A stretch of 64,000 nt of DNA from sequence record PP456877.1, one strand, 5' to 3'. The position numbers and the translations under genes are program-made. Positions within the stretch are counted from its first letter, which is position 1; each line of letters begins with the position of its first letter. The notes below the pieces were generated by a model that was not told where the DNA came from, did no database searches, and was given only the letters and a program-made list of their open reading frames with translations. Below, piece after piece: positions 4,530-63,943 of this stretch.

Positions 4530-4898
4530 TTAATATCCTTCATTGAGTAGTTCTGCTAAAGCACGTGCCTGTGAAATATCAGTAGAAGCAAAAACATCAG
4601 AAAGATAGTTATCATGTTCTTTTGCATTCTGACGTAATTCATCCATTAGATGTTTATTAGATACAGCCCATACTTTCCACAGATTTTTATAATCATCATA
4701 TTTAGGATTATATCCGTCTAGTGGTGGTTTTCCTTTACCAGCTTTCCAGTGGTTGGAGTATTTGCGATATCCTTTACAATCTAACTGCCAAGCTTCCTCA
4801 ATTGTTCTACCATCAGGAAGCCTTGCGTAAAGAGCCGAGAATCTTTTGTCACCAACAGATGAGCATTCATATCCTCCTCGGCGCTTCCACTGATATAT
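4530..4898 (-). CDS. Hidden 122-codon ORF with ATA in place of the start codon
   Basis: Stop-free frame (ATA)YQWKRRGGYECSSVGDKRFSALYARLPDGRTIEEAWQ...SQARALAELLNEGY*. The ATA overlaps the upstream TAA as TA-ATA. Confidence 0.65.
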   Translation of the reverse strand: MYQWKRRGGYECSSVGDKRFSALYARLPDGRTIEEAWQLDCKGYRKYSNHWKAGKGKPPLDGYNPKYDDYKNLWKVWAVSNKHLMDELRQNAKEHDNYLSDVFASTDISQARALAELLNEGY

Positions 4899-20862: not shown

Positions 20863-22254
20863 TTACAGTAGACGACCCATCATTTGGTTTCCACCTAGAT
20901 TCATCATCGCAGTGTTACCATTGCCAGCTAGAGAGGGGTTTAGTGCTTGTGCAAATCCACCACCCATCGGCATTTGATTGCCCATGAGCTGCATCATCTG
21001 CGGATGCATATTAGCCATCATTGGTTGCTGTGGCTGCATCATCCCAGGCATTGCAAAGTTATTGTTCATCATAACAGGTTGTTGCATCATTCCGGGTTGA
21101 GCAAATTGGTTTTTCTGCCCAGCGTTTAGAAGATCTTGGATAGATGCTTTATTGCTAGTTTGAACTTGTTGTGCGGGACGTTGAGGTGCCTGAGTCATTG
21201 CTACAGCTTGACTCATAGATGGATTAACATTCACAGTTGTGCCTACTGGTACACGTGTAGAAGTAGTTTGTTCTTTAGCAGTATTACCCACTTTAACTAC
21301 ACTATCCTTTTTCTGGACAGGAATTTGGGCAACTGGGTTTACAGTTTCAGAAGCTTCTTCTTCTACTTCATTGCTGACTCCTTCATTACCATCAAGAGAG
21401 GGGATCTCACGTTGCATCTTTGCAAAATCAGCAATCACCTTCTCATCAACTTTTGAATAAGGTTGAATAGCATCATCGAAGATCAGGCGATACTTATCAA
21501 TAACACTATTTAGTTGAGTAGTGATTTTGTTAAATGCCTGGATAAGACATACAAAATAAGGTGCTACCCGCTCAACTGTTCCTGCTGAATATTCAGTTGG
21601 TGAATCACCAAATGGTACAACTAGTTTAAATAGTTCGATTAGAACTGGCCGCTGTTTCTTAGGTACATTTACTCCAAGGATATCATCTTTAGAATAAAGA
21701 TCCTCTACGATAGGGAACCGAATAACGCAGATACGGTTAACTGTCTTCCCATCAAATTTACCATTTGCTTTTAGATACACGCTTACAAAACGTGAACGTT
21801 TTTCAGCAGCTTTGACAACCTTATTAAACCACTCAATGGTATCTGGCTTAGCACCGGATAGTTTCTTTAGGAAGTCTGAACATTCTGGTGGAATGTCTTT
21901 ATGCAGAGTGGAGTCGGCAGCTACTTCTAAAATACGTGAAGTAAGATACTTCACAGTAAACATTAGATTAGCCTTAACTTGACGCTGCATATGCTGTAGT
22001 ACTTGAGAAGTACCTAGCCGAGAGATCTTTTCAGATAGCGGGTGGAAGGCGATGTAATCATCGCCTAGCCCTTTACGAAGCCAATCTTTAGTAGGTACCA
22101 CTAGTCGCTTACCATCTACCTTTGCAGGTGCAGGTCGACCAAGTGGATCGAGAATACTGATCATATCCTCTTCACCTACTTTGTATCGGAAAGCAGGTAA
22201 TACTTGATCACTATAGAACTTGGAAAGAGAAATCGTAGGCATTGTTATCACCAA
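20863..22254 (-). CDS. Conserved nucleus-block protein (gp70 position) with Q/M/P/G/N-rich tail
   Basis: 463-aa ORF; the last ~90 aa are low complexity. Confidence 0.75.
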   Translation of the reverse strand: MVITMPTISLSKFYSDQVLPAFRYKVGEEDMISILDPLGRPAPAKVDGKRLVVPTKDWLRKGLGDDYIAFHPLSEKISRLGTSQVLQHMQRQVKANLMFTVKYLTSRILEVAADSTLHKDIPPECSDFLKKLSGAKPDTIEWFNKVVKAAEKRSRFVSVYLKANGKFDGKTVNRICVIRFPIVEDLYSKDDILGVNVPKKQRPVLIELFKLVVPFGDSPTEYSAGTVERVAPYFVCLIQAFNKITTQLNSVIDKYRLIFDDAIQPYSKVDEKVIADFAKMQREIPSLDGNEGVSNEVEEEASETVNPVAQIPVQKKDSVVKVGNTAKEQTTSTRVPVGTTVNVNPSMSQAVAMTQAPQRPAQQVQTSNKASIQDLLNAGQKNQFAQPGMMQQPVMMNNNFAMPGMMQPQQPMMANMHPQMMQLMGNQMPMGGGFAQALNPSLAGNGNTAMMNLGGNQMMGRLL

Positions 22255-29983: not shown

Positions 29984-30001
29984 GGGAGCCAAATGGCTCC
30001 C
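29984..30001 (-). terminator. Hairpin terminator
   Basis: GGGAGCC-AAAT-GGCTCCC with a downstream T-tract on the - strand. Confidence 0.55.
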
Positions 30002-30049
30002 TTTATATTACTTGATACATACAGTTAAATACTTATATTAACTAGTGTA

Positions 30050-30562
30050 CTAATATTTACTTGCAATTAATTCAATGTGGTATACGATAACAGTACCTTC
30101 TTTTTTCTTGAGTGTACTTGTTAAAACGATATCGTGTTCAGTAACACATGCGTGTACACTAATGGGCCTGGTAGCAATCTCGGCACCTGCCCCTGAAAAA
30201 TGAGTTGTAGCTACATATAACTGGGTATCATCAATTAACCCATTTGGATCCCTACCAACATGTACAAATGGTGGCCTGCTAGCCACCTTAGGATATTCGT
30301 CTTTAATAACAAGATGACCATCTTCAGATGGGTAAGCATAGTCATATCCAGTCACATAGATACGTAGAGTGCCATTCTTAAATGCTTCTTTAAGATAAGA
30401 ATATTCTTCAAGATTAAAACGAGTTGAATCAACTACAGCAGTAGTTAATTTAAGAATAGGGTGTAGTGGCATTGATGAGTCATTACGCTTAATTAATAGC
30501 ATCTGTATTTTCCTTAACGTAAAAAGCAATATGTGGATGGTTCCACAATGGACTCTCATCAC
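30050..30562 (-). CDS. Hypothetical protein (start probably MLLIKR)
   Basis: ORF track. Confidence 0.65.
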   Translation of the reverse strand: MMRVHCGTIHILLFTLRKIQMLLIKRNDSSMPLHPILKLTTAVVDSTRFNLEEYSYLKEAFKNGTLRIYVTGYDYAYPSEDGHLVIKDEYPKVASRPPFVHVGRDPNGLIDDTQLYVATTHFSGAGAEIATRPISVHACVTEHDIVLTSTLKKKEGTVIVYHIELIASKY

Positions 30563-30824
30563 AAAAACTATAACTATGTATTTCCTCGCCAGTATCTAAT
30601 TTAATAGAGACCACTTCACCTTCAATAACTGTGAAAATAAATTTAGTATCAGGTGAAACATAATCACCAGTTACATAGACATTATCAGGAAGATACAATA
30701 GTCGTGTTTGATTATCGTGTTTAAGTTCTATTCCATCTGTACTATTAAAATACATATATCCCGTACCATCTGGACTTTTTTGAAACATCTTTAGTTTATT
30801 TGGTACGAGTAGATCAATTGACAT
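30489..30824 (-). CDS. Hypothetical protein
   Basis: AGGAG RBS; 111-aa ORF. Confidence 0.7.
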   Translation of the reverse strand: MSIDLLVPNKLKMFQKSPDGTGYMYFNSTDGIELKHDNQTRLLYLPDNVYVTGDYVSPDTKFIFTVIEGEVVSIKLDTGEEIHSYSFCDESPLWNHPHIAFYVKENTDAIN

Positions 30825-30875
30825 AGATCTCTCCTAAACGATAGAAGAGAGCCCCTGTACGGGACTCTCATTTAT

Positions 30876-31487
30876 TTAACCTAGAAGATTACCTACGACT
30901 GAAGTTGGATCTTCTTCACCTGCGTCCAGATGCCCATCAATAGCATTCCACATACGGATGATGTCAACTTTTTCATGCAGACTAAGTTTACGATCACTCT
31001 TGATATCTTCGTGATAGTTTTTATAACCGAATTCTTTCTTATCGGTATACATAACTCCATCCATCACGCGACGATAATCAAACTGTCGTTCACCTACTGC
31101 ATCACCTTGGATGTTATTATAAGAACCACTATATCCATCAACTTCATTATTAAGATACATAGTTCTTAGACGCTCATGCGCCATAACCCAACGTTGCATA
31201 ATCGGACCAGCTGTTTGTAGTTCAGCTAAAGTCTCAAGATACACAATGTTGTTCGACTGCCATAAATTATCTTTCTTTGTGGTTAGATTCCGCAGTGCTT
31301 GAACAGCAGCTGATTCACTAATCATACTGTACATATTTTGTGCAGTATTGAAAAAGCTAGCAGCAGCAGTTGACATAGTTGAACGCAGTGCCTGACTACG
31401 CTCACCCAACCATTGGGTTGTTTGCTGTGTAAGATGGCCACCTGCACAGATGTCCAAGAGGTCTACACCATGTGCATCTACAATCAT
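30876..31487 (-). CDS. Conserved protein at phiKZ gp59 position (possibly import factor Imp3)
   Basis: 203-aa ORF. The Imp3 assignment is from recalled gene numbering only. Confidence 0.55.
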   Translation of the reverse strand: MIVDAHGVDLLDICAGGHLTQQTTQWLGERSQALRSTMSTAAASFFNTAQNMYSMISESAAVQALRNLTTKKDNLWQSNNIVYLETLAELQTAGPIMQRWVMAHERLRTMYLNNEVDGYSGSYNNIQGDAVGERQFDYRRVMDGVMYTDKKEFGYKNYHEDIKSDRKLSLHEKVDIIRMWNAIDGHLDAGEEDPTSVVGNLLG

Positions 31488-31543
31488 TATTCACCTCAGA
31501 TACTGTACTCATATACCCAGCACAGATTAAATAGACGTTGCAT
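31443..31543 (-). repeat. Copy B of a 101-nt diverged direct repeat (15-aa stub ORF 31496..31543 + start of the gp59-like gene)
   Basis: Ungapped alignment to 31809..31909, 76/101 identical by hand count. Confidence 0.85.
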
Positions 31544-31556
31544 AATAGGTTACCTC

Positions 31557-31739
31557 TTAAAGCTTAGAGATCATTTCGACATATGCATCGACAAACCTTC
31601 TGTTTACCACTACATCACCATTCCCACGAGTGATATATCTCCCAGTTAATATAGCTACCGATCTGGCTTCACGTTCATCTCGTTCGGCTTGTGATAAACG
31701 TTCCGGGTTACGTCGAATAATTTCACGAATATTAGACAT
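31557..31739 (-). CDS. 60-aa Arg-rich early protein lying between the repeats
   Basis: AAGGGG RBS; downstream of an early-type promoter. Confidence 0.7.
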   Translation of the reverse strand: MSNIREIIRRNPERLSQAERDEREARSVAILTGRYITRGNGDVVVNRRFVDAYVEMISKL

Positions 31740-31770
31740 TGGATATTCCCCTTATCACTATTGCACCTTA

Positions 31771-31795
31771 GTGATATAAATCTGAAATTGAATTC
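31771..31795 (-). promoter_or_regulatory. Early-type promoter
   Basis: TTTCAGATTTATATCAC, variant of the motif. Confidence 0.55.
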
Positions 31796-31808
31796 AGTGT
31801 AACTTCAC

Positions 31809-31909
31809 GGCACAGCTGTTCAAGAGATCCACACCATGGGCGTCTATAATCATTATACACTTCAGTTATTGGCTGTATATGACCAACATAGATTAAACGG
31901 ATGTTGTAT
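31809..31909 (-). repeat. Copy A of the repeat (end of 31862..32287 + truncated gp59-like stub 31794..31853)
   Basis: Encodes ...QHPFNLCWSY* then MIIDAHGVDLLNSCAVKLH*. Confidence 0.85.
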
Positions 31910-32287
31910 AGGTAGGTTAAATGTGTCTAGTTCCTGACCGATCCAATTGATAGCTTTTGTAACACCTTCAACAGTTACAGTTAATTCAACATGGATATCA
32001 TGTTCAGGTGCAGTCACCACAATAGTGATTGGATCATCATGTTTAATACGGAATCCAAACTTAGGGTGATGGAATCCCGCATATTCACCTTTAGTATTTT
32101 CTAGAATACATTCAAATAGATTAGTTTCTTTATTAAGTTTAAATGTAACTAGTTTATCTGAATCTTTAAGTAAACCATTATCCCCAAATACATTGAATCG
32201 ATAATGCTTATGGCAGATACCAAGTGTTTTTGGTACATCATGGGAATTATCGATTTGCTTAGTACATTCATTACATTTACTATTCAT
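31862..32287 (-). CDS. Hypothetical protein with N-terminal CxxC...C-H motif
   Basis: KCNECT...GICHKH. Confidence 0.7.
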   Translation of the reverse strand: MNSKCNECTKQIDNSHDVPKTLGICHKHYRFNVFGDNGLLKDSDKLVTFKLNKETNLFECILENTKGEYAGFHHPKFGFRIKHDDPITIVVTAPEHDIHVELTVTVEGVTKAINWIGQELDTFNLPIQHPFNLCWSYTANN

Positions 32288-32299
32288 CCTTATTTACCT

Positions 32300-32683
32300 T
32301 TAATAAATTTGCTTATCAAAAGAGCAATTAATTGGGATAGTGATAACTTCATTAGTAACTACATGTTTACCTGTCTTTTTAAAGAATTGTGCAAATTTTG
32401 AAGTAGCTGGAATTACAAAGGTATCATCCCGATCATTATTTGACATATTGTACAGAGTAAATTTACCGTCTAAATCAAACCTAATTTGCCATTCAATATC
32501 ACGTACTTTGAAATCTATACCAAACCTTAAGTGATCATCAATTAATTCAGAACCACCGTATTCATAAGCTCCGGTGAAATTCCAATTAATTTCTGCAAAT
32601 TGGAAAGTTACAGGATGTTCACCATATTCATCTTGTATATAGTAACCATCATGAGCTTTCCAATAGATAACTAAATCATGCAT
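32300..32683 (-). CDS. Hypothetical protein
   Basis: 127-aa ORF. Confidence 0.7.
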   Translation of the reverse strand: MHDLVIYWKAHDGYYIQDEYGEHPVTFQFAEINWNFTGAYEYGGSELIDDHLRFGIDFKVRDIEWQIRFDLDGKFTLYNMSNNDRDDTFVIPATSKFAQFFKKTGKHVVTNEVITIPINCSFDKQIY

Positions 32684-32703
32684 GCTACCAGCCTCAAAGA
32701 AAT

Positions 32704-32728
32704 AATAGGGGAGTTAGACTCCCCTATT
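32704..32728 (-). terminator. Hairpin after the nvRNAP beta' gene
   Basis: AATAGGGGAGT-TAG-ACTCCCCTATT. Confidence 0.7.
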
Positions 32729-32731
32729 AAT

Positions 32732-32935
32732 TTATTTTGCTTTTAGCCATTCTTCTAATGGCGGTAAATATTTCTCATGTGCCCAGTTAATAATTGTTTC
32801 TACAACAGGACCCTGTAATTCAAGGTTACCTGAGATTTCATGTGGTTCATCAATAGATAGAACCCATGTATGTGGCGCAATGCGTTCAGTTGCTTTAGTT
32901 AGATACACATCAGGCATTAACGTTAAATTAAGTTG
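32732..32935 (-). CDS. nvRNAP beta' N-terminal subunit (gp55/56.1), exon 4
   Basis: QLNLTLMPD...WLKAK*; begins right after the terminal G of intron 3 and continues DFDGD-Q as in RpoC. Confidence 0.9.
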   Translation of the reverse strand, partial: QLNLTLMPDVYLTKATERIAPHTWVLSIDEPHEISGNLELQGPVVETIINWAHEKYLPPLEEWLKAK

Positions 32936-33323
32936 CACTATCTTCGTACAGCATCGTCAGCATCATGTCTAAAAATCATCCATTGGAAGACATGTCGCTG
33001 CTGTACCGTCCACTTAATATCTCCCGACATTAAGTAACTGCTCTAGCTTTCACTAGATGGTGAGACTATATCTTCTTCCCAGAGGGAAGCCTTCTATTTC
33101 GGATCACTTAATCCTACTCTACTCCCTTGTCTGCTTTCGCAGTGGTTTCGATAGTCGTTGAACGTTCTTCCTATATTGCCTTACGGTAATACGTAGAAGC
33201 TTCGCTGCTGATTGTCCAATCCTAACACTTTTCAAACCGTTACATTTTAGCTTTCGCTATCTGCTTTGGTAGTTAGGCTCTAAGGAGGTTCCAGCAATTA
33301 AGAAGGTTAGGAGACCAATTAAA
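32936..33323 (-). mobile_element. Group I intron 3 (388 nt, no ORF)
   Basis: P AAUUGCUGG, Q AAUCAGCAG, R GUUCAACGACUA (33152-33163), S GAAGAUAUAGUC (33064-33075); exon GGAGAU pairs with IGS GUCUCC; ends in G. Confidence 0.92.
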
Positions 33324-33341
33324 ATCTCCGTCAAAATCAGC
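33324..33341 (-). CDS. nvRNAP beta' exon 3: 18-nt micro-exon encoding ADFDGD
   Basis: GCT GAT TTT GAC GGA GAT, between an intron-terminal G and a U-ending 5' splice site. Confidence 0.92.
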
Positions 33342-34714
33342 CGTGTTGTTCAGTATCAGTCGTTAATTGATACCCGCACCATTACGTGCAGCTCTAGCTT
33401 TCACTAGAAGACCAGACTATATCTTCACCCTTCCTTTCGGAGTGGGGTGTCTCCCATTTCGAGTCACTTGACCCTACATCCTATTTCTAGGACCGGTGCA
33501 CCTGATACCGTAATAGTCGTTGAACCTTCTCCTATTCCTAAATGGAATGTTACGGAGCTTGGCTGCTGATTGGCCCTACCTAATCTTTTTCAAACCTTGG
33601 CTTTGTCTTTCGACTCGCAGTGGTAGATTAGTTTAACAGGATATCCCAGCAATTAGAGAGAACTCAACCCAACGATTACTCATTGGGGGAACTAGACTTG
33701 ATTAACTTAATAAGGTATTTATCAAGCACCCCATTCTTTTCAAAGATTGCTCTTCGAACAGTATTCGGATGCTTAATACCGACATCTCTTGCAAAGTGTG
33801 GAATACTCGGATACACTTTGGTAGTGTTCAAGATGGTGTCAGTTACTTCAATTGGAGTACCTTTTCCATTACTAGGTTTTCCAAATGAGGCTTCAATTTC
33901 TTTTTGAGTGTATTTAGGAAAATCTTCAGGATTAGCGGTATATGAGAATACCAAACCATCCATGATTTCCTTACTACCTCTAACTAGATGGTAATAGGCT
34001 TTATTACGTTTAGTACCTAGTGCAAGTTCCATTTCAGCTAAGTTATGAAACACATGTAATGTCTTAGTCTTATAGTCTAAAACATAAACTGTCTTGGTAC
34101 TATCTCGATCAGCAATCTTAGTCTCACCGGTAATAAATTCAAATGTGAATCTATTTCTATACGGCTTAGTCTTATGATCACGTATAATAACCCAAACCGT
34201 ATTTTTATTAACTCCTAATGCCCGAGCAAGTTCACTCATCGAGTAATAAGTAGTCTTTTCACCAGTGGTAACATCAGTTGCAATTACTCGTCTATTTTCT
34301 TTTCTTAATCCATTTTTGTAAGCATGTTCTAAGTTTTCACCACGAGTCATCCACTCCAAATTAGATGGTAGATTATTATGTTTGTTGCCGTCTTTATGAT
34401 TGACTTCATAATTTGGTCCAGGTGATGGACCATGGAATGCAGTACAGATTAGAATATGTGATAATGTAGAATTACTTCTGCCATTATCATTCTTTGCACC
34501 TAGCTTCAGATATGAACCAGTTGAGGTAGGTACTTTGTATAACTTACATATCCTGTTTAACCGCTTATGACGAATTGTTCCTAGGTTACTAGCTTCATAT
34601 GCTGAGTATCCAGGAATATCCCGCCATTAAATTTTAAATGAAGCCGGATCAAAGACGGACACTACTCCGTTTTGTTCCATTGTTTTTACCCTTATTTAGT
34701 TATTTGCTTATCCG
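33342..34714 (-). mobile_element. Group I intron 2 (1373 nt) with HNH ORF in the P1 loop
   Basis: P and Q present, R at 33514-33525, S at 33415-33426; exon CCUAAU pairs with GUUGGG located just after the HNH stop. Confidence 0.92.
33676..34680 (-). pseudogene. NUMOD4-HNH homing endonuclease with in-frame TAA at codon 18
   Basis: MEQNGVVSVFDPASFKI*WRDIPGYSAYEASNLGTIR...HILICTAFHG...VNHKDGNKHNNLPSNLEW followed by three NUMOD1/IENR1-like repeats; TAA at 34627-34629. Confidence 0.85.
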
Positions 34715-34822
34715 ATTAGGCGCTTTCAAGCATAATACTGACATGCTGATAGAATTATCATTAATATCATCTTTTACTTTGGTAATAAAGAACTGCTGTG
34801 TAGATCCACGTTGAAGCGTTGG
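34715..34822 (-). CDS. nvRNAP beta' exon 2 (36 aa)
   Basis: PTLQRGSTQQFFITKVKDDINDNSISMSVLCLKAPN; joins HRN to give HRNPTLQR (RpoC NRAPTLHR). Confidence 0.92.
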
Positions 34823-35172
34823 CAATATCTTCAGTTAGTTCGTTAGGCTAACCCGCACCATTACGTGCAGCTCTAGCTCTCGCTAGACGTTGAGACTATA
34901 TCTTCACCTTTGGCTTTACCCAGTAAGGTGCTTCCCACTTCGAGTCCACTTGGACCCTACGTGCCAATGCACTAGTCGTTGAACTTTATCCATACCTTTC
35001 GGGTTAGGATCTTAGCTGCTGATTGACTCTATTCAGTTATTCTTAAGCATTCATAGAACCTTTCGGAACTATTGTAGCTAACTGACCTAACGAGTTGTTC
35101 CAGCAATTCAAGAAGTTTTGTCGAGCATCATTTCTGATACAAGGAAACCATTTAGTATTGATATACAAATTA
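34823..35172 (-). mobile_element. Group I intron 1 (350 nt, no ORF)
   Basis: P and Q present, R at 34973-34984, S at 34894-34905; exon GAAAU pairs with IGS GUUUC; ends in G. Confidence 0.92.
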
Positions 35173-36309
35173 ATTTCGGTGAAAAGTACAACCCATCCCT
35201 TTATAAGGGGCTGCTTCTGCAATTAGCTCTTTAAATAGATCTGCAATGATTTGGTTATATTGAAGTACATTCTCATATACAAATGAGAATGCTTCACGAG
35301 TTGTCATGTTAAACTTTGCTTTTAGTTTATTGGTTAGATGATACTTTAATAATTGACAACCTACCCCCCAAGGGATATGTAGTTCATCATAATCATGCGG
35401 GTCACTAATAGAAGTGATTACTGCACGTGCCGTAGCGTTGAGACGAGCACCAAACATGTGACGCCGAGCAAGACCAGGCTTTTGAGCAATTCGTGATTTT
35501 GCGTAGATCTCGTAGAACTGGCCATATAGTCTTAGTCCTCGCATAGTCCTATTCTGAGCTTTAATTGGACTAAGTGGTACAGATGATGCATCAATACTAG
35601 CGAAGGTTAAGGTAGCGTCAATTGCTGCTTCAATTGGTTTATCTAAGTAAGTACCAGATGTGGTTGATTCTGCTACGAAACAGAGTTTAGAAGGAACTGG
35701 TAAATATTTAGGGAATAACTTATCTTTATTCTGAGCAACGAATTGAGCGAATTCGGATTTATTATTAGAGATAATATTTGCATCTAGTAGGAATTGGAAG
35801 ATCTCATTGAAGTTATCAATGAAGTGATTTAATCCTCTTTCAAATCCTCGATGCAGTAGCCTATCTACTTTCCTGCGTGTTTCTTTAGAACCAATAGATT
35901 CTACATCGTACCGATAAGAAGTATCAGTTAGATAGGCTAAGAAATCGAATTCTTTAGTTACTAGATATCCGGTTAGCATAATGATTAAACGTGGGTTAAT
36001 TAGGCTACGTACATGTTTTGGTGTACGAACCCACATTGATGGTTCGATAGGGCGGCTAGAAGTATTGACAACTGGAGTATTACAAATATCACAGATTACT
36101 CCGAGTTTATGTGCGTCTTCGATTGCTCGACAATCACAGCTTACACTACTTTCAATTGCTTCTGAATCTTGGAAATGAGAATAGAAATGTCTATCAAATT
36201 CTTCTTTCTCATCTGAGTTACTCGTATTGTAATCATTGGCATAAATTCGTTTACCCGTAAATTGATCATGAACTTCATTATGATCAACAACTTTGGCATA
36301 AAGACCCAT
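35173..36309 (-). CDS. nvRNAP beta' N-terminal subunit (phiKZ gp55), exon 1; start MGLYAK
   Basis: AGGAG RBS; Zn finger CDC...CDIC; ARLNATARAVITS (RpoC region C); ends FHRN at the splice site. Confidence 0.9.
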
Positions 36310-36333
36310 ACCAAACTCCTGTTTATCGATTAA

Positions 36334-36378
36334 CAAAAAAAGGAGATATAAGCGGCCCCCGAAGGAGCCGCTTATATC
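36334..36378 (-). terminator. Strong intrinsic terminator
   Basis: GATATAAGCGGC...GCCGCTTATATC plus a T-tract. Confidence 0.85.
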
Positions 36379-36380
36379 AG

Positions 36381-36700
36381 TTTTTACAATGGACCACCAA
36401 CGGAGCCTGGCCCGAGCCTAGCGTCATCTACAAAGCTTAACCTCCGCTCTTCTTTGTAGCATACCGGCACTAGTCTCATTTACCATCCATTGTAGTTTTT
36501 GATCACACGTTACCTTTTGAGTAACTCCTTTCGGTTAAGTGATCTATCATCCTCGTGTAGTGATAGGTCGACCTAGACTAAGTCCACTAGTCGATTACTT
36601 CACGGAACCTACTCCTAACCGTTATCACCGAAGTGAACCAGGGTCGCAGTATTAGAATCGGGATGTTACTTATTTAACATCCCTATCTACCGAGGTATTT
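36381..36700 (-). ncRNA. Candidate structured RNA downstream of chmA
   Basis: ORF-free, GC-richer than flanking intergenic DNA, at least seven helices including C(UUCG)G and GAAA tetraloops. Confidence 0.6.
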
Positions 36701-36704
36701 CCTA

Positions 36705-38585
36705 TTAGTACCAGGTACCCGGTGCATTATAGGAAGGAGCGCCGTAAGTTTGACCCATGCTGCCAGCCATGCCAACTTGTGCACTACCAGAAACAGCCAT
36801 GTTACCCATACCGGTGTAACCAGCGAAGCGCTGTTGACCGAAGTTGGTAATTAGGTTTTCCATGGTTACAGTTACACCAGCTGCTGCTGCTGCGGCATCC
36901 ATTGCAGTGATGAATTTCGGGTTAAAGGTTAGACGACGAGCACGACCAGTATAGGTAACGTTACCTAGGTACATCTTGTCGAAGCCTTTACTGTTATTCA
37001 TACGACGCACAATGTGGTCATTACCTACCTGAGTAGCATACCAGGTCTTCCACTCTTGGTCATTACCTTCAGACATGTTCATGGCACCTAGAACGTCAAG
37101 ATCACGACGGTCGCTTAGTTCGCCATGCTCATCAGTGTAGTGACCGAGGTCTACTTCATGATGGTTGTCAAAGATAATCGGACCAGCTTCAGCTAGGTTA
37201 TAGAACTGACGGAAATCAGTGCCGTATAGGTTAGTTAGAGCTTGGAAGATCAGGCTAACTGCACGAGCTTGGTTTACGCCACCAGCTGCATCTAGGATGA
37301 CTTGCTCAATAGCTGAGTTGTCGCCCATTGGATCGATATCGATCTGGAATGCAGGGTTCTGGTTAACCATCTTGTTCATTAGCATTACGAAGTTGCTGTC
37401 GTCTGCCATGAATGCTTCGGTGCGAGTTTCAATCGCTTTACCTAGCTCTGAGTAATAACCAAGTGCACCAATATCACGCATCTTGCTAGTAGCGATCTTC
37501 GGCATTAGGGTACGAGCCCATGCCTGGGATGCAGTTGCACGATACGCATTACCGAGTGCGAACAGCCACATTTCTAGAGTCCATGCTTGGATCCAGGATG
37601 CCTTACGAACGTCAGTGATAACGATGTAAGGAGTGAACTGCGGAGGTAGAGCTGCACCAGGTAGAGTTACGCCAAACATACCTTGTTGCTGGCCAGTGGT
37701 CGGAGTCCAATGTAGATCTACGAATAGACTAACTTGGTTTAGCTGACTATCGGTATCATAGAACTCGTTCTCAGGTACGTTGGTTTTCTTACCACGGCTA
37801 GTGGAGATGACCATGTCAGAACGGATCGGATTACCACAGCTATCTTTAACCGGAATACCATTGTAGTCTAGGTTGCAGGTAAGCTGTTCGTTTTCTGCTT
37901 TGATGTGGGTCGCAATAGAGAACGGAGTCTCATTGTTACGACGTGCAATAGCATCTTCACAGATGTTAACAGATTCAACTAGTAGGTTCTTAACAGCTAG
38001 TTCATCTTTGAAGTCGAAGTCAGCATACACTGCACGTGGACCGGCAGATAGTACTTCTAGACCAGGGATGTTGTAACGGTTCCGTAGGAACTCGCCGATC
38101 TTGCTCCAGTATTGAGCAGTGAATACATCACGCGGTAGTACCTTCTCTTCAATGATGTCATCAGTTAGACCATTGTTGATTTTGTGGGTACGGGGACGGA
38201 TGCGAGTACCAGGTAGGTTATCGAGTACTAGAGTACGAACGAATGCCTTCATGGAACCATTGATATCTTTAGCTAGTTTAACAATGAGTAGACCAGCCAT
38301 ACCCACTTGTTGTGCATCGCGATCGAAACGATGGATATCGAAGTCATCAGGTAGGTCCTGATGGCGGATTGCTTCTTCTTTTACTTTAGTGAATACTTGT
38401 AGGGCATCTGCTGAACGAGCATCAGAGCCATCTAGCCGACCAGAGCGACGCATTAGATGGTTAATGCCAGTAGTGGACCCAGGTGCGCCAGCCGGACGTT
38501 GAGCTTGACGTTGTGCAGTGGGTTGCGGAGCCGGAGCGGTAGCTTGAGTTTGAACGGTGCCGATTTCGTTTTCGTTAACAGCCAT
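36705..38585 (-). CDS. chmA: Chimallin, major phage-nucleus shell protein (phiKZ gp54)
   Basis: Recognised sequence and size (626 aa); position upstream of nvRNAP beta'; strong high-expression codon bias. Confidence 0.9.
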
Positions 38586-38657
38586 TTTAAATACCTTTAC
38601 GATTATGGTTTCTTGATCAAGAAGAACCTAAGTACTTAGTATACTAGATTCAATTTA

Positions 38658-38681
38658 GTAATATAAATCTCAAATTTTTTT
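38658..38681 (-). promoter_or_regulatory. Early promoter of chmA
   Basis: AAAAAAATTTGAGATTTATATTAC. Confidence 0.75.
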
Positions 38682-38896
38682 CATTACAACATAGACGCTA
38701 TAATCTGCTATCAGCAGATCGTAACGAACACTATGTTCACTACATATTATTACAATCTGAGTATTATTTATTTTTCATCTTACAATTTCCATATCTTCTT
38801 TTTTGAGTTTATGGGTATAAAGTTTGAATCCAGAAACTAATTTACGTCAGTCCTGTATTAAATAATAACTATCAGTATTTTTATAAAATGCAGTTA

Positions 38897-39262
38897 TCAT
38901 TTACTTCGCATATACTTACGAACTGTTCCAAAAAGAGAATGATACAGTTTGTATAGTTTACTAACTGGATCAACTTTATTATTATCAGTTGTATCAAATT
39001 TAGCAATAAATGGTGAATGTGCCGAAGCAGATGTTTCATTTACTTTAACTACACTACCAAATCGATATGCGACTAATACCTTTATTAATTCCTCATGGAG
39101 TTTAGTAGCAGTTGCTAATGGATTGGGATCATTAGGATCTATCTTAATCCTACGCTCGACATTGAAAAAGTTTACTACAATTTCTTTGCTAGTCATGTAT
39201 ACAGTAAGATCTTTGTTATTACCTAAATATAGTGGCGGATCTTCAACATTATTTTTAGCCAT
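38897..39262 (-). CDS. Hypothetical protein
   Basis: 121-aa ORF with AGGA RBS. Confidence 0.7.
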   Translation of the reverse strand: MAKNNVEDPPLYLGNNKDLTVYMTSKEIVVNFFNVERRIKIDPNDPNPLATATKLHEELIKVLVAYRFGSVVKVNETSASAHSPFIAKFDTTDNNKVDPVSKLYKLYHSLFGTVRKYMRSK

Positions 39263-39304
39263 TGTATATTCCTATTTGTAATTACTACTGTTGTTACCAA
39301 ACTA

Positions 39305-39328
39305 TGATATAGATCTCAATTAATTTTT
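39305..39328 (-). promoter_or_regulatory. Early-type promoter
   Basis: AAAAATTAATTGAGATCTATATCA. Confidence 0.6.
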
Positions 39329-39343
39329 AATCGGATAATAACC

Positions 39344-40435
39344 ATGTATAATTTATTTAAGAATGCTCCGTCACGTAAATTGGGGCAGGTGGTTGATCCT
39401 AACATCCATTATATCCGACGAATCTACGCTGAGCAAATTAGGGACGTTAAAAGTTATTATAGACGGGCACCGAAGTATGTTGAATCTAAAAACATATTAG
39501 CACAAATGATTCGACATTTTAACGTAGAGTTACTAAGTGATGATGCTACTTTTATAAAGAACGTGGACGATCGTTCACGTGCTATTATTCGTTCATTTGG
39601 TATTACATCATCTTTAAATAAAGGTAAGGTTCATGTAGGTGGTGTTACACTTGGTCCTCAAACTGAAGAAGTTCTAGTATCCACATCAGAGAGCTTTGAT
39701 CTAAAAGATCTAAATAAAACATGGTATAAACTTTCCCCTGTTACGTATCTGTATCATACACGTACTGATACTAATTTACCTATCATGAACAATACCACAC
39801 AGGGTAGAGGCTATGGTGTAACTCTAGTAAATATACCAATGCTTCTTGTGATGTACCGTTACTGGTATCGATGGCAAGTTGAGAAGAATCCTGATGAAGT
39901 AGAAGACACTTATAGGTTTATAGGATCATTTGTATTGCCAAATATGGTTGACTCTTATTTAGATATTTCTTTCTTTAATAGGTTAGCAAGGAATGCTTTA
40001 GATATTAAAAATCCAACATTCCCTATACCGCATCCATTTTACATCACTGATATGAATCCACGTATTGATAAACTATGTACAACTATCAATAGAGAATCCA
40101 TATTAAAAGGTGTAGACATGGAAGGTTTATCATGGATAACACCAGCTATCGTACAATCTAATTTGTTCGATATGATGCGGCTCCCACGAGAACCTATTAA
40201 CAGGAATAATGAATGGGCTTATGTATTGGCTCGCACACCCTTCATTAAGTATCTTGTAGGGCAGCTTTTAAAGAATACTGGTTATGATCAATCTTCTGTT
40301 AACACTGTATTAATTGATCTTATAGAAGCATCTAATGATCAAGCATTTAAACAACAAGCAAATAGTGAGTTTGTAAAAGCTCAACAGGCACAAGTTGATT
40401 GGATGATAGATGCACTTAAAAGAAAAGAAATGTGA
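39344..40435 (+). CDS. Conserved protein, likely virion structural (gp52 position)
   Basis: Solitary + strand 363-aa ORF. Confidence 0.7.
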   Translation: MYNLFKNAPSRKLGQVVDPNIHYIRRIYAEQIRDVKSYYRRAPKYVESKNILAQMIRHFNVELLSDDATFIKNVDDRSRAIIRSFGITSSLNKGKVHVGGVTLGPQTEEVLVSTSESFDLKDLNKTWYKLSPVTYLYHTRTDTNLPIMNNTTQGRGYGVTLVNIPMLLVMYRYWYRWQVEKNPDEVEDTYRFIGSFVLPNMVDSYLDISFFNRLARNALDIKNPTFPIPHPFYITDMNPRIDKLCTTINRESILKGVDMEGLSWITPAIVQSNLFDMMRLPREPINRNNEWAYVLARTPFIKYLVGQLLKNTGYDQSSVNTVLIDLIEASNDQAFKQQANSEFVKAQQAQVDWMIDALKRKEM

Positions 40436-40470
40436 CATAAACCCCCTCCAATTTAGGAGGGGGTTATATG
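40436..40470. terminator. Bidirectional hairpin
   Basis: AACCCCCTCC-AATTTA-GGAGGGGGTT. Confidence 0.75.
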
Positions 40471-40478
40471 CCGTTTTA

Positions 40479-41201
40479 TTAGAAATTACCTTTCTTCATT
40501 TTAGAAAGTAATTTTCTACGTTCAGCTCGGTTAATTCCTGGGATAGCTGGTAATAGCATTTTATTACTAAACTTACCTGGCTTGCGGTCATGATTTAGTA
40601 ATTGATCAACTACAGCTTGGTCACTGCTTTTAACTCCATTATCCATTTCATCTAATGGGTCCATAATAGTTTTAGCAGTCAGTCTTAGATGAGTAACTAG
40701 TTCATCGAATGAACTATCAGTATTAATAAGTTGTTTATCAACACCTTCTTTAAGAGCTTGTTTAATAGTTACGTCTTTTACTAGAATATTATCACATTCC
40801 CAAAGAGTTGTATGATGGGTATTTAGCATTAATTCAAGTGAGACATTATTGTAATCGTTGTCAGCACTTGAGTGCCAATTGAATTCATCAATATAGTCAT
40901 TTAGACTCATTAACTTTGGTGGTTCGTTATTAGAGGTAATTAAACCAATTGGTTGAACATCATCTAGTGAACTTTTATCACTAGTAATTGCAGTTGTTTC
41001 AGTAGTAACATCAACTTCTTTTAATTCGTTGGTATAAGTTACATATACTAATTCTTCACTACCGTCATCCAAAAGAACATAGGCTGTTGCTTTGGTGGAA
41101 TCATCAGGTGCTAATCCATGGATCCTAATACGATTATCATTTACTAATTTACTATAATCATTCCAGGTAATTACGCGGACTTCTTTATTCTCTTTCATCA
41201 T
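40479..41201 (-). CDS. Hypothetical protein
   Basis: 240-aa ORF ending in NRAERRK, a SEC-C-like basic tail. Confidence 0.7.
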   Translation of the reverse strand: MMKENKEVRVITWNDYSKLVNDNRIRIHGLAPDDSTKATAYVLLDDGSEELVYVTYTNELKEVDVTTETTAITSDKSSLDDVQPIGLITSNNEPPKLMSLNDYIDEFNWHSSADNDYNNVSLELMLNTHHTTLWECDNILVKDVTIKQALKEGVDKQLINTDSSFDELVTHLRLTAKTIMDPLDEMDNGVKSSDQAVVDQLLNHDRKPGKFSNKMLLPAIPGINRAERRKLLSKMKKGNF

Positions 41202-41394
41202 TAGTTACCTCTTTTAATTTGTCTTTAATATAACTTCGGATAAATGCTCGTTTTTCTTCACGAGTTAACCCAGGTGGAGCGGTTGGTAATGTGATAGTAC
41301 CACTGTTAATTGCCTTCTTCATCCGATCTAAGTCAAAATTAAATTCGGTATGATTTGTCATTATATTGAACCATATTAAGTTAGTAATTGGCAA
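41185..41394 (-). CDS. Small hypothetical protein (start probably MTNHT)
   Basis: Overlaps the next gene; downstream of a promoter motif. Confidence 0.55.
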   Translation of the reverse strand: MPITNLIWFNIMTNHTEFNFDLDRMKKAINSGTITLPTAPPGLTREEKRAFIRSYIKDKLKEVTNDERE

Positions 41395-41398
41395 TCAG

Positions 41399-41424
41399 AC
41401 TATATAAATCTTAATTATTTTTTA
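41399..41424 (-). promoter_or_regulatory. Early-type promoter
   Basis: AAAAAATAATTAAGATTTATATAG. Confidence 0.5.
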
Positions 41425-41426
41425 GT

Positions 41427-41456
41427 ATATAAGCCTCCCACTAGGGGAGGCTATAT
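41427..41456 (-). terminator. Hairpin after DNA polymerase gene
   Basis: AGCCTCCC-ACTAG-GGGAGGCT. Confidence 0.7.
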
Positions 41457-41459
41457 TTC

Positions 41460-43655
41460 TTAATAGAAGTCAGAGATGAGTCGATCGTTATTTTTATCAA
41501 TAAGGAAAATACCTAGGGACTCTAAGGTTAGATAGAATACACCCATAGTGTTTCCAATGATTGTTCTAACGTCAGCAACACGCGTAATAACTTCTGGAAT
41601 ACGACCAGTTTCTACTACTGTACTAGGAATATGGAAATCACCAATACTGGTTTTATTTTCTTCAGTAACCCATGCTTGAATACGAGCAGCTAATTTCTTA
41701 TCTTCGATACCATCAATCCATTCTTTGATCGCAGTTTTATTATTAAGAGTAACTGAGATCTTTACATGTGAATAAGGTGGATCACCAGCTTCACCAAATG
41801 ACGGAGCAAATACAGTCTTCCACACCAATCCCTTTTTATGAGTTGAGTTATCTTCAGATTTATAAGATTCAGGTCGTTTAGTTTGACCACTTGTAAGATA
41901 CTCGGCTTTACCACTTCTAACAGACTCAATAATTTCTCTTTCGATATTACCGGCTTCTTTTAGAATTGAAGCTAAGTCGATTTTCTCTTCAGCCTTTACC
42001 GTCTTAATAATATCTTCCATGAGTTTTTTAGCACGACTATTAATCTTCTTAGGTACTTTACTATCCCTTAGCCCCACGCCTTTAATCTCCATCCGAGATT
42101 CATTAAACATCACCCCTTCTTGGGCATCCTGTGATGCAAAGTAATGTTTAGAACGAGTAGTTAAGGCCAGTACTGCGAAATAAAATTCGTTCTTCATTGC
42201 AAATAGACGAAGCTTATCTTTAGATACACCCATATTAGCGGATTGAATCGCTAAGATATGCATAACTACTTCAGATACTAGAAACACTAGTGCAAATACT
42301 AGTCGTTTAGCTTCATTGCTAAAAGTTACTTTACCAAAGAATTCCTCAACCCACCATTGTAATGTAAACATAGTGGAGTCAGTATCTGAAATAACAGCAG
42401 CTCGCCTATATACCGTTGGAAAAGCATGAATACTTGATGGTACACATTTAGTCAAGAAGAAAGCTTCAATCAATAGACGATATTCATTAAGAGTTTCAGC
42501 GATATTTCGACCAGTTGCAAAAATTTGATTCAGTGTATCTGGATCAGATTCTTTTAGTTTAGCTTTAGATCGACCTTTAACAGTATCAAAGCAAATAAAG
42601 CTAGCCAAAAGATCCATATCACCATCATAAGTTGAATATTCTTCTTCAGTGATGATTTGTTCTTTTGTTCCAACCTGGCTTAATTTAATTAGAAAGCTCT
42701 TGATTAATTCTTTATTGTATTTATATAAGTGATATAGATCACCTACATACATAACTGCTGCTCGTTCGACTGGTGTCATCCCAGTAGCTAGTTTTAAAAT
42801 CTGTGCCGTGTAATACTTATTTTGCCAATAGTGTTTAGTTGAATAAAGAACCATATCAACTACTTCTTCTGGCGTTGGGCAATGTAGATTAAAATTAGTT
42901 ACTGCTTTTTGAATTAACTCCATATCAGCTACATTAATAATATTTACTAAATTAGCTTTTGTGATTTCCGGAGTATAATAATGCCTATTACCCATAATGA
43001 ATTTTTCATTATTTGAGTTAGCATAAGAGGTACCAGTTCTACAAGTAGATGTTAAACTAGAGTGTGTGGACTTATAATAAAGAATAGTGGCAGCAGATAC
43101 CGTACCTCCTGAATATGAGTTATTGTTAATTTTGAAGTTTTCTTGTTCACCTTTACGTACTTGTGCAAGTTCTGTTTTAATTTGTGAATTCTCTTTATCG
43201 CCGGCCTGTAGGAAAGCAGCTGCTTCACGTTCAGCCTGCATCTGCTCACCTTTAACACGCTTACGGTTTTTCACACCTTCAGCAATATAGATGGAGTGCG
43301 TCGACTGTCTAACAGACTCTGGTAAATATGCGGTCATTGATGGAGATAATAATAGATTCTGTTTCTTAACACGGTTAAGGAAAGCCATAAATGAAACAGT
43401 CTTTAATTCCCTATCACCAAACTTATTTTTATCTAGGATAGTTGCTACTGGGTTACGAAGTGCATATTCGCCATTTTGACGTAATTGTTCTTTAACAAAT
43501 TCTTTACATTCTTCTAAACTAATATTTAATTCATCTTTTGTCATTAATTGAAGATATTTGGCATTATCATCAAGACATGCATTAATGATATCAATATCAC
43601 GATGGTAATCATTGACATCTTTTAAAAACGGATTTGGTTGGGCAAATGCGGTCAT
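41460..43655 (-). CDS. Split family-B DNA polymerase, motif B + C half (phiKZ gp50)
   Basis: Motif B KINNNSYSG; motif C SDTDS. Confidence 0.85.
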   Translation of the reverse strand: MTAFAQPNPFLKDVNDYHRDIDIINACLDDNAKYLQLMTKDELNISLEECKEFVKEQLRQNGEYALRNPVATILDKNKFGDRELKTVSFMAFLNRVKKQNLLLSPSMTAYLPESVRQSTHSIYIAEGVKNRKRVKGEQMQAEREAAAFLQAGDKENSQIKTELAQVRKGEQENFKINNNSYSGGTVSAATILYYKSTHSSLTSTCRTGTSYANSNNEKFIMGNRHYYTPEITKANLVNIINVADMELIQKAVTNFNLHCPTPEEVVDMVLYSTKHYWQNKYYTAQILKLATGMTPVERAAVMYVGDLYHLYKYNKELIKSFLIKLSQVGTKEQIITEEEYSTYDGDMDLLASFICFDTVKGRSKAKLKESDPDTLNQIFATGRNIAETLNEYRLLIEAFFLTKCVPSSIHAFPTVYRRAAVISDTDSTMFTLQWWVEEFFGKVTFSNEAKRLVFALVFLVSEVVMHILAIQSANMGVSKDKLRLFAMKNEFYFAVLALTTRSKHYFASQDAQEGVMFNESRMEIKGVGLRDSKVPKKINSRAKKLMEDIIKTVKAEEKIDLASILKEAGNIEREIIESVRSGKAEYLTSGQTKRPESYKSEDNSTHKKGLVWKTVFAPSFGEAGDPPYSHVKISVTLNNKTAIKEWIDGIEDKKLAARIQAWVTEENKTSIGDFHIPSTVVETGRIPEVITRVADVRTIIGNTMGVFYLTLESLGIFLIDKNNDRLISDFY

Positions 43656-46817: not shown

Positions 46818-47891
46818 TTAGTATAGATTATTTTCTAAAATGTATCGCTCAGCTTGCGCTCGCTGATCATCAGGTAAATAATCACCACGTTGATATTCAA
46901 ATACTAATTTCTCAATAGGATAAGTTGCATTCTTATTCTTGTATACAGAAATTACATAGCTATGATACTCTAGTTCATACTTAACGTCATGCTCAATTCT
47001 GGTTGAAAAATATGCCATGTTAATAGAACTAACTAGAGGGCTAATATATTTCTCTTCAAATAGTAATAAATTATCAAGTCCTAAACTTGCAAAGAAATCA
47101 TGGTTAACCTTAGGTATTAGATAAGATACTTTAATATTACTATATTGTTTAACAATTACACCAATAAGTAATGCAGTTAACTGTTCTTGAATATATTCTA
47201 CTGCGATGTTATATGCATGGTTAGTGGTGATGTGGTCTTTATTTAAAGTATAGCTACCACCATTAGCAAGAGATAGCTGAGTTTTACGCCTAGATTCGTA
47301 GATACTATAACCTAATGTTTGTAAATTAATTCTGTCAAAGCCATGGAAGAATGTACGGAGAAATTCACTAAATAAATAGTTTAATGGGTTCAGTAGGTTA
47401 AGTGATACCACTGCATGATCATCACCATTATCAATCCCATGGACACGATCATATTCCGCGATACGATAATCTTTGCCACTGATTAAAGTTATAACTGAAC
47501 CAGCTTTAACTACATCCCATTGGATCCATGTACCGCTATCGATATATTTTGCTACTTGCTTATAGATATCTAGATAGATAGTTTCTAGATAAGGTAGTTT
47601 CATTAGATTTTCTACCCAAGCAACTTTATTACTATCTACGTCAGTTACAGCACAATTAAAAATAGCTGCTGCCATCTTAAGATTGGTGTACTGGTCTTTG
47701 GCTGTTTTATATGAAACTAAACTCTCTACTATATTTTCAACCATTAGATGTAAAAACTGTTGAGCCACATCTTTACTCAATTTCACCCCAATCGCTTCAT
47801 CAATTGAAGCTGAAGCTGTAAGCTGACCTAGTAAATCGTATATTGCTTTTTCTTGGTGGCGTGTATCAAGTACAATGAGCTTATTCGACAT
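46818..47891 (-). CDS. Hypothetical protein
   Basis: 357-aa ORF with GGAG RBS. Confidence 0.75.
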   Translation of the reverse strand: MSNKLIVLDTRHQEKAIYDLLGQLTASASIDEAIGVKLSKDVAQQFLHLMVENIVESLVSYKTAKDQYTNLKMAAAIFNCAVTDVDSNKVAWVENLMKLPYLETIYLDIYKQVAKYIDSGTWIQWDVVKAGSVITLISGKDYRIAEYDRVHGIDNGDDHAVVSLNLLNPLNYLFSEFLRTFFHGFDRINLQTLGYSIYESRRKTQLSLANGGSYTLNKDHITTNHAYNIAVEYIQEQLTALLIGVIVKQYSNIKVSYLIPKVNHDFFASLGLDNLLLFEEKYISPLVSSINMAYFSTRIEHDVKYELEYHSYVISVYKNKNATYPIEKLVFEYQRGDYLPDDQRAQAERYILENNLY

Positions 47892-47904
47892 TATATTTCT
47901 CCAA

Positions 47905-48333
47905 TTAATTTTTTGGAATAGCGATCCAAACTGTGTTCTTTAACCGATAGAATATTACAAACTTACCTGCATTTACTATAGGTATAATTTTTAATATATC
48001 CCAAAGATCAGATGCGGCTTCATAATTGTCATGAAACCATTGGATTTCTTGAGGGGTATTGTTTATTGGGCTATATCCAGTAGTATACATGAAATCAAAA
48101 GAGTCAATAGAGTATTTAAAGAAGTCATCAATTAAGCTGTCCTCTACTGATTTAAATATATGCTCTAATGTACCATAGTCATCTGGATGTATTCCAAAGC
48201 TTTGGCACCTAATTGCTAAACGCGCATTTATTAGCTCTTTTGGTGATCTTGGTACTAACTTGGCTATCACCCTTGTTACATCTATTACATACAGGTCAGC
48301 TACTTGGGGAGTAGTCACAGTACAATCTCTCAT
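47905..48333 (-). CDS. Hypothetical early protein
   Basis: First ORF after a promoter motif. Confidence 0.7.
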   Translation of the reverse strand: MRDCTVTTPQVADLYVIDVTRVIAKLVPRSPKELINARLAIRCQSFGIHPDDYGTLEHIFKSVEDSLIDDFFKYSIDSFDFMYTTGYSPINNTPQEIQWFHDNYEAASDLWDILKIIPIVNAGKFVIFYRLKNTVWIAIPKN

Positions 48334-48349
48334 TAAATGTTCAGGAACA

Positions 48350-48374
48350 TGATATAGATCTAAAAATATTTTTA
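48350..48374 (-). promoter_or_regulatory. Early-type promoter
   Basis: AAAAATATTTTTAGATCTATATCA. Confidence 0.55.
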
Positions 48375-48460
48375 GTCAAATCTGTTCGTGGTAAGCCGAT
48401 GTATATTATACCTTAGTTGGGTATTATCTCCATCGAAAAAACGCGTACAGCGCATTATAG

Positions 48461-49270
<810 letters not shown>

Positions 49271-61804: not shown

Positions 61805-63943
<2,139 letters not shown>

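Follow-up and report, generated by a model that had tools for sequence, protein, structure and literature searches.

PhiKZ is the model nucleus-forming phage and chmA its key early gene, and the locus described here raises the question of what lies directly behind that gene, ahead of the first non-virion RNA polymerase (nvRNAP) gene, and what it does there. The window, a stretch of 64,000 nucleotides from sequence record PP456877.1, is a phiKZ-type genome: the 381 bases at this locus match Pseudomonas phages PA02 and KEN49 at 100% identity and phiKZ (47,523-47,902) at 99.7%, and the chmA product is 100% identical to the KEN49 nuclear shell protein. The following features frame the interval.

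36708..38585, minus strand: chmA (chimallin, nuclear shell protein; PHIKZ054 homologue; Pfam PF25677, E=0, full length)
36335..36378, minus strand: intrinsic terminator, with a 15-bp stem and UUCG loop at 36378-36345, then UCCUUUUUUU (U-run to 36335)
35173..36309, minus strand: exon 1 of nvRNAP beta' (gp55, PHIKZ055 homologue), placed by tblastn with the PA1C and PhiPA3 homologues and by the phiKZ annotation

The chmA stop codon (TAA, 36707-36705) is followed in frame by TAG, giving a double stop at 36707-36702, and gp55 starts at an ATG at 36309 with an SD motif, AGGAG, at 36320-36316. The gap between the two genes measures 394 nt at GC 0.44 and ranks third by length among 52 gaps in 49 kb of annotated phiKZ. 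Intergenic gaps in that stretch have a median length of 61 nt and GC of 0.33, which bears out the remark in an earlier note on this DNA that the other gaps are mostly short and AT-rich; the remaining G+C-rich gaps there are intron sequence. The two other longest unannotated gaps in that part of phiKZ (NC_004629) lie at 35,763-36,340 (578 nt, GC 0.34; roughly window 47,900-48,470) and at 62,629-63,100 (472 nt, GC 0.37; roughly window 21,100-21,600), the latter just upstream of the gp71-73 polymerase genes.

The interval had been described as ORF-free, which is nearly so: a 31-aa ATG frame (36384-36479, minus) and a 38-aa GTG frame (36539-36655, plus) exist, and neither is conserved in relatives, the ATG being gone in SL2 and Pawinskivirus and indels of 1-3 nt breaking both frames. 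Several recent GenBank records carry ORF calls inside the element, on either strand, that are probably spurious 'hypothetical proteins' (locus-sequence positions 1556-1672 and 1732-1827 in KEN49, 2474-2581 and 2727-2915 in HPP-Temi; not conserved).

The earlier note had proposed a structured RNA between the chmA stop codon and the terminator; its coordinates and context proved correct, and the fold is backed by covariation. Homologues occupy the equivalent site in 47 phiKZ-like phages (94.5-100% identical), in Pawinskivirus (about 85%; PA1C, PS119XW, HPP-Temi, BRkr and HHBS36_1) and, far more diverged, in PhiPA3. The region corresponds to 47,529-47,922 in phiKZ and to 41,455-41,969 in PhiPA3. 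From sets of 13-14 sequences from these phiKZ-like phages, Pawinskivirus and PhiPA3 we derived an RNAalifold consensus, built one covariance model for each half (A; B and C) and realigned all sequences. The fold comprises some 310-320 nt in three domains, spaced 6 nt from the terminator, with the following parts.

36552..36694, minus strand: Domain A, four-way junction (RNAalifold consensus; 47 pairs)
36694-36691 / 36555-36552, minus strand: Domain A closing helix CUCG/CGAG, with a U-A to C-G change in Pawinskivirus
36689-36653, minus strand: Domain A arm 1, containing GGGAUGUUA/UAACAUCCC, in which one pair changes from U-A to C-G to A-U
36651-36610, minus strand: Domain A arm 2, with the tip UCAC-UUCG-GUGA
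36609-36604, minus strand: Domain A junction GGUUCC, invariant
36603-36560, minus strand: Domain A arm 3, with the base GUGAAG/CUAUCAC, and UCGAC/GUCGA
36559-36556, minus strand: Domain A junction UACA, invariant
36501..36544, minus strand: Domain B, three-way junction, all pairs kept (consensus and realignment)
36385..36494, minus strand: Domain C, closed by the 9-bp long-range helix UACAAUGGA/UCCAUUGUA

Domain B consists of the closing helix GAUCAC/GUGAUC, the junction UUAA, a small CC-GAAA-GG hairpin and a GUUACU/GGUAAC hairpin. Domain C holds a stacked arm (CUAGUG/CGCUAG, then CUACAAAG/CUUUGUAG and an AGC/GUU tip) and a short hairpin (GCCAG/UUGGU, loop GCUCCG), and in Pawinskivirus and phiHQ an A-U pair of its closing helix has become G-C. 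Of the eight helices first listed for this RNA, seven lie within the covariation-supported consensus, including the long-range UACAAUGGA/UCCAUUGUA helix that encloses CUAGUG/CGCUAG and CUACAAAG/CUUUGUAG. The eighth, CUAUCA/UGAUAG, is not supported: in W10-2, Pawinskivirus and PhiPA3 only 4-5 of its 6 pairs can form. A mutually exclusive pairing, GUGAAG/CUAUCAC, is retained in both the phiKZ-like phages and Pawinskivirus, where compensatory changes turn U-A into C-G. Neither this helix nor the CUCG/CGAG closing helix, likewise kept in both groups, had been on the original list.

Covariation carries the case for the structure. In Domain A, 98.9% of the cells in the 47 pairs are paired, nine pairs have changed on both sides and none of 500 shuffles reaches the covariation score, with slid controls giving 0-1 both-side-changed pairs and 30-43% paired. 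Domains B and C together have 47 pairs with all 611 of 611 cells paired and three pairs changed on both sides (0/500 shuffles; zero such pairs in slid controls). Conservation and covariation across the chmA 3' regions of relatives, which had been named as a check, are thus both present, with 12 of the 94 consensus pairs in the whole element showing compensatory double changes, in a shallow alignment of three clades, one of them joined by lateral transfer, so that several 'compensatory' pairs trace to one event. Independent compensations in single phages are seen in arm 3 of W10-2 (A-U to G-C) and in the Domain B hairpin of HPP-Temi (A-U to G-C). Outside PhiPA3, pairing is broken by three single-sequence mismatches in Domain A and by none in Domain C, and unpaired positions are enriched in variable columns (Fisher p = 0.045 and 0.002 for the two halves). 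Pairs are therefore kept by compensatory changes beyond what relatedness or composition would give, the general criterion for a conserved structured RNA, within three clades only.

The strand is set by G-U pairs, which fill 53 and 115 cells in the two halves; on the opposite strand no more than 91% and 82.5% of the cells would pair, indicating that the functional molecule is chmA-sense RNA and not DNA or an antisense transcript. Folding energy was dropped as support, since the minimum for the 320 nt without the terminator (-98 kcal/mol, z = -2.47) does not discriminate the sense strand from the antisense strand (z = -2.63); it is the covariation, matched by none of the 500 shuffles, that places the structure beyond chance. 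The element is a genuine, evolutionarily maintained, chmA-strand-specific folded RNA of about 310 nt.

PhiPA3 shows which parts of the fold are held and which are replaced. Its copy matches the full Domain A model at 47 bits (E about 1e-11). The junction strings are there, as are arm 1 and the CUCG/CGAG closing helix, which is complete when the copy is placed on the structural model; the GUGAAG helix then keeps four pairs. The tip of arm 2 has become a GAAA-loop hairpin and arm 3 has gained roughly 150 nt, and the Domain B closing helix reads AACCAC/GUGGUU, with two compensatory changes. A conserved core with a replaceable periphery is the usual signature of a specific RNA tertiary fold or a specific partner, and the invariant junctions and replaceable helix tips in PhiPA3 are consistent with a partner that recognises a defined tertiary fold. 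In the terminator, the stem core GCGGCUCC-UUCG-GG(G/A)GCCGC (one stem position varies), the loop and the U-run are common to phiKZ, Pawinskivirus and PhiPA3, and the outer stem pairs differ among them.

We compared the element with known classes of RNA. Rfam 15 (4227 models) returned only terminator-like noise for 35800-37300 (E 0.8-7) and nothing at E up to 1 for seven related loci. The only gathering-threshold matches in the whole window are three group I introns, all outside the element, and since the same library finds these neighbours at 76-89 bits, the search is sensitive enough for structured RNA here. No match to the group I intron model (RF00028) appeared in the element even at E up to 10, and the element lies between the double stop and the terminator. 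ARAGORN found 0 tRNA-like or tmRNA genes in 30000-42000, and neither the element nor the related loci matched a riboswitch or T-box aptamer in Rfam. Compared with the rest of the window, introns included, the element gave one 28-nt chance match within a coding region and no second copy. The earlier note's statement that the RNA could not be matched to a known family stands now that an Rfam search has been run, with no family found here or in related loci. An antiterminator formed by the repeated GGCUCC (Domain C loop and terminator) was considered and dropped, as PhiPA3 is without the upstream copy.

The downstream nvRNAP beta' gene is split (window 32741-36309, minus). In alignment with its PhiPA3 and PA1C homologues it falls into 36309-35173, 34822-34715 and 32935-32741, and Rfam places group I introns between these segments at 35170-34871 (89 bits), 33713-33392 and 33344-33041 (76 bits each), 1.2-3.7 kb downstream of the element. 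These segments leave out about six nvRNAP beta' residues, in the stretch that separates the last two introns, which may form a micro-exon, and a 227-aa ORF with a TTG start (33676-34359, minus), between exon 2 and the second intron match, may encode an intron-encoded protein. The first intron of the phiKZ reference contains an HNH gene, gp56, that is missing from this window; a long-read study saw no splicing in phiKZ (PMC10914365). The Goslar record has a group I intron annotated directly 3' of the nvRNAP beta' ORF (locus-sequence 4061-4137), so that intron insertion in this gene recurs across distant chimalliviruses.

The element is restricted to chimalliviruses of P. aeruginosa, in three genera and one host species. 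The gene order chmA, terminator, nvRNAP beta' is general among the compared chimalliviruses, and in RAY, Goslar, LucasX, D6 and Noxifer the gaps are 85-250 nt and hold little beyond the terminator, so that the structured insert is derived and accessory. UUCG-loop terminators 3' of chmA also occur in D6, Noxifer, 201phi2-1 and others. The half-element covariance models gave no significant match in Psa21, 201phi2-1, D6, Viktualia, Noxifer, RAY, Goslar or LucasX, and in Phabio matched Domain B only, at a non-significant E = 0.13. A Domain-B-like three-way junction may, tentatively, occupy the corresponding spot in Phabio and 201phi2-1, whose hairpins MAFFT set out of register, leaving no clean alignment of the junction. 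A DNA-pattern scan of IMG/VR recovered PhiPA3 and PA7 themselves and nothing else, the pattern occurred once in metagenomes, by chance and in AT-rich sequence of no relation, and in GTDB genomes pattern 1 had 0 matches and pattern 2 had 2, about the chance number, neither of which fits the model beyond the pattern. On comparison of these loci, the element is an accessory insertion at the ancestral chmA - terminator - nvRNAP beta' junction. Many nucleus-forming relatives do without it, so neither chimallin expression nor shell assembly can depend on it in general; for the part in shell assembly that had been suggested we found no evidence, and D6, Noxifer, RAY, Goslar and LucasX form nuclei without the element.

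Other structured chmA 3' UTRs, of 190-440 nt, occupy the same site in 201phi2-1, Phabio, Viktualia and Psa21, in some cases followed by small ORFs. Psa21 and phiHQ share a second, unrelated 3'-UTR element (locus-sequence positions 4756-5150 and 2194-2500, respectively) with long identical strings such as AAAGGUCUGACG, UGACCUGCCAAAGUC and AUAGGUAAACCGUAUUA and with no match in Rfam. A third set comprises 201phi2-1 (locus-sequence positions 4756-4950), Phabio (4750-5010) and Viktualia (4759-4960): a GAAA-capped hairpin covaries between 201phi2-1 and Phabio, and a 9-bp hairpin with a conserved ACCUAAAU-CUGG loop shows three compensatory changes between 201phi2-1 and Viktualia. In this set the terminator is followed by extra small ORFs (gp106 and others) and then by the polymerase gene.

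Within the three genera, the element and the flanking genes differ in their relationships. Identity between phiKZ and PA1C rises to 80-89% in an island that begins at the chmA stop and reaches about 20 nt into gp55, against 50-65% in the coding flanks. The PA1C proteins are nearer to those of PhiPA3 (ChmA 65%, gp55 84%) than to those of phiKZ (ChmA 49%, gp55 66%), whereas the PA1C element is 85% identical to phiKZ and 53% to PhiPA3. This conflict between element and protein trees indicates that the element moved between the Phikzvirus and Pawinskivirus lineages, and the 85% element identity across genera whose ChmA proteins share 49% reflects lateral exchange and not only constraint. Domain C is moreover a divergence hotspot among phiKZ-like phages that are ~99% identical (162 nt of it hold 13-14 differences, compared with 2-3 across 303 nt of chmA); in SL2, T2P, W10-2 and PA7 it carries Pawinskivirus-type patches in a mosaic with phiKZ-type internal loops. 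PhiHQ has the 3' half of the element only (phiKZ-type domains B and C), fused to the 5' element that it shares with Psa21, and is thus a chimera. Both the hotspot and the chimera fit lateral exchange, and the exchange of an RNA module between phage genera sharing a host is relevant to phage evolution.

Published data bear on transcription through the locus and on protein contact there. PHIKZ054 has an early and a middle promoter (Wicke et al., PMC8244752), and chmA is co-transcribed with the downstream nvRNAP cistron PHIKZ055 (Gerovac et al. 2025, PMC12571901), so that the element would also be an intercistronic spacer in read-through transcripts; in 201phi2-1 the gp55 homologue is without a detected promoter (PMC11512511). 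The main text of the phiKZ transcriptome papers describes no RNA species from the chmA-gp55 gap. The placement in the chmA 3' UTR proposed at the outset agrees with a conserved structured RNA on the chmA strand that ends at the terminator. In PhiPA3, Enustun et al. found a ChmC eCLIP peak between chmA and gp54, which they read as a small regulatory RNA (PMC11077065), and this interval contains the homologous element. The suggestion of ChmC binding is supported to that extent by a peak at the homologous position, but ChmC has little sequence specificity and the peak may reflect abundance alone.

Based on these observations, we propose as the best explanation, with a probability of roughly 0.4, that the element is a protein-recognised 3'-UTR and intercistronic module of chmA. 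It would be made as the tail of the chmA transcript, ending at the strong intrinsic terminator, and a partner protein would bind the fold, ChmC being the leading candidate (it crosslinks at the homologous PhiPA3 place). Binding would make the chmA message, a very abundant one, more stable or mark it, or a stable 3' fragment with its end at the terminator would accumulate, and the terminator would set read-through into gp55 by deciding what share of transcription continues into the nvRNAP beta' gene. The effect of this protein-recognised module may be small, as relatives without the element make chimallin and nuclei normally.

Unlikely, though by no means negligible, is a processed non-coding RNA acting in trans. 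On this reading the 3' portion of the chmA transcript, cleaved from it or produced independently, would persist as a stable RNA ending at the terminator; it might, for instance, titrate a host factor or a host defence in the manner of a sponge or decoy, or give ChmC condensates a scaffold. 3'-UTR RNAs that share the terminator of their parent exist in phiKZ, where that of PHIKZ298 was detected by Grad-seq and Northern blotting (PMC8545117), and in PAK_P3 (PMC10914365); the element shares the intrinsic terminator and U-tail of its parent mRNA, as Hfq-type 3'-UTR-derived sRNAs do. The interpretation of the PhiPA3 peak by its authors points the same way, and the accessory spread, the exchange between co-infecting phages, the phiHQ chimera and the other cargo that the locus holds in relatives resemble accessory or counter-defence loci, which move fast. 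However, neither a processing site nor a 5' end or promoter of its own is known for such an RNA, and pairing in trans with the chmA 5' region or the gp55 ribosome-binding site is neither significant nor conserved (z -2.3 to +0.3; the regions differ per phage). At ~310 nt and with three structured domains the element is also unlike base-pairing sRNAs, and no repeat-like mimicry of a CRISPR repeat or an antitoxin was seen.

A bolder possibility, which we regard as more doubtful still, is that the element is the founding member of a laterally exchanged, modular RNA class at the chmA-nvRNAP junction that acts in trans as a specific ribonucleoprotein. If so, it could nucleate or tune ChmC-RNA condensates at the nuclear shell, or it could be a decoy for host RNA-directed defence or for an RNA-decay factor, and a decoy would explain the host-restricted, accessory and recombining distribution. 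The Psa21/phiHQ and 201phi2-1/Phabio/Viktualia elements would then be alternative versions of one strategy.

Control of termination in cis, in which the fold would bind a ligand, a protein or the polymerase and tune nvRNAP beta' dosage against that of chimallin, seems to us distinctly unlikely. The positions are suggestive: the element stops 6 nt short of the terminator, the conserved island spans the terminator, the ribosome-binding site and the first gp55 codons, gp55 relies on read-through (PMC11512511, PMC12571901), and with early and middle chmA promoters two different polymerases cross the site (PMC8244752). By inspection, however, the terminator 5' arm has no conserved upstream complement, no alternative pairing that sequesters it was found, and the sole competing helix pair seen lies within Domain A, far from the terminator. 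The repeated GGCUCC string is missing in PhiPA3, Rfam gave no riboswitch or T-box matches, and a bare terminator serves the same gene pair in relatives.

We consider it improbable that the element is a passenger, the laterally spreading remnant of a mobile element or older RNA gene, functionless now and conserved through recent transfer. Such a remnant would account for the tree conflict (element of PA1C 85% identical to phiKZ and 53% to PhiPA3, proteins nearer PhiPA3) and for the Domain C hotspot with its Pawinskivirus-type patches, and mobile group I introns are found in the neighbourhood. Against it, nearly all helix changes keep pairing at the 15% divergence between phiKZ and Pawinskivirus, paired columns are depleted of changes, and the PhiPA3 copy, at 50% identity, retains the junction core, which is not expected of neutral decay; nor is there a transposase, an endonuclease or repeat borders, and the window contains no second copy. 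The ribozyme considered in the earlier note, self-cleaving or otherwise catalytic, is very improbable, for although the size, the multi-junction architecture, the UUCG and GAAA tetraloops and the invariant junction nucleotides are compatible with one and three group I ribozymes lie within 3.5 kb, Rfam gave no ribozyme or intron family match at E up to 10 in the search that scored the neighbouring introns at 76-89 bits, and the element interrupts no gene and has no recognised conserved cleavage-site motif.

The element is in no Rfam family and carries no annotation, and the literature on it amounts to one sentence on the PhiPA3 eCLIP peak. It offers a small, genetically separable target for the handling of the most abundant message, for recognition by ChmC and for the dosage balance between chimallin and the polymerase. 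If its deletion proved harmless, the practical gain would be better annotation only.

Several known systems resemble the element in part. The group I introns of nvRNAP beta' share several traits with the element: both are structured, form G+C-rich islands against an A+T-rich genome background, belong to one transcription unit and are laterally mobile; the element differs in being intergenic and not intragenic, has no sequence similarity to them and gives no Intron_gpI score at E up to 10. By analogy, the 3' UTR elements of RNA viruses (tRNA-like structures, xrRNAs and 3' translation enhancers) may offer a parallel as multi-domain RNAs of the 3' end whose domains are gained, lost and exchanged as modules between related viruses, although genome type, host machinery and the 3' end, here a terminator hairpin, differ and the element has no tRNA-like or Rfam match. 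ROOL and GOLLD are phage-associated, and the function of ROOL, GOLLD, OLE and raiA is not deducible from sequence. The element has no sequence or structure match to these four in Rfam and a very narrow range, and it is much smaller than ROOL and GOLLD and embedded in a 3' UTR where they are free-standing near tRNAs, but it shares with all four a complex multi-junction fold with conserved junctions and variable peripheral helices.

The PHIKZ298 3' UTR RNA and the PAK_P3 RNAs ncRNA1 and ncRNA2 are shorter (about 100-210 nt), have about two stem-loops and are seen as discrete species, whereas the element has ~310 nt and three multi-helix domains with covariation. Like the element, they lie behind the stop codon of a highly expressed gene and ahead of its intrinsic terminator, are structured, have no strong small ORF and are conserved in related phages (PMC8545117, PMC10914365). 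The element founds a new RNA family, of a known general kind: the structured 3'-UTR or non-coding RNAs of phages.
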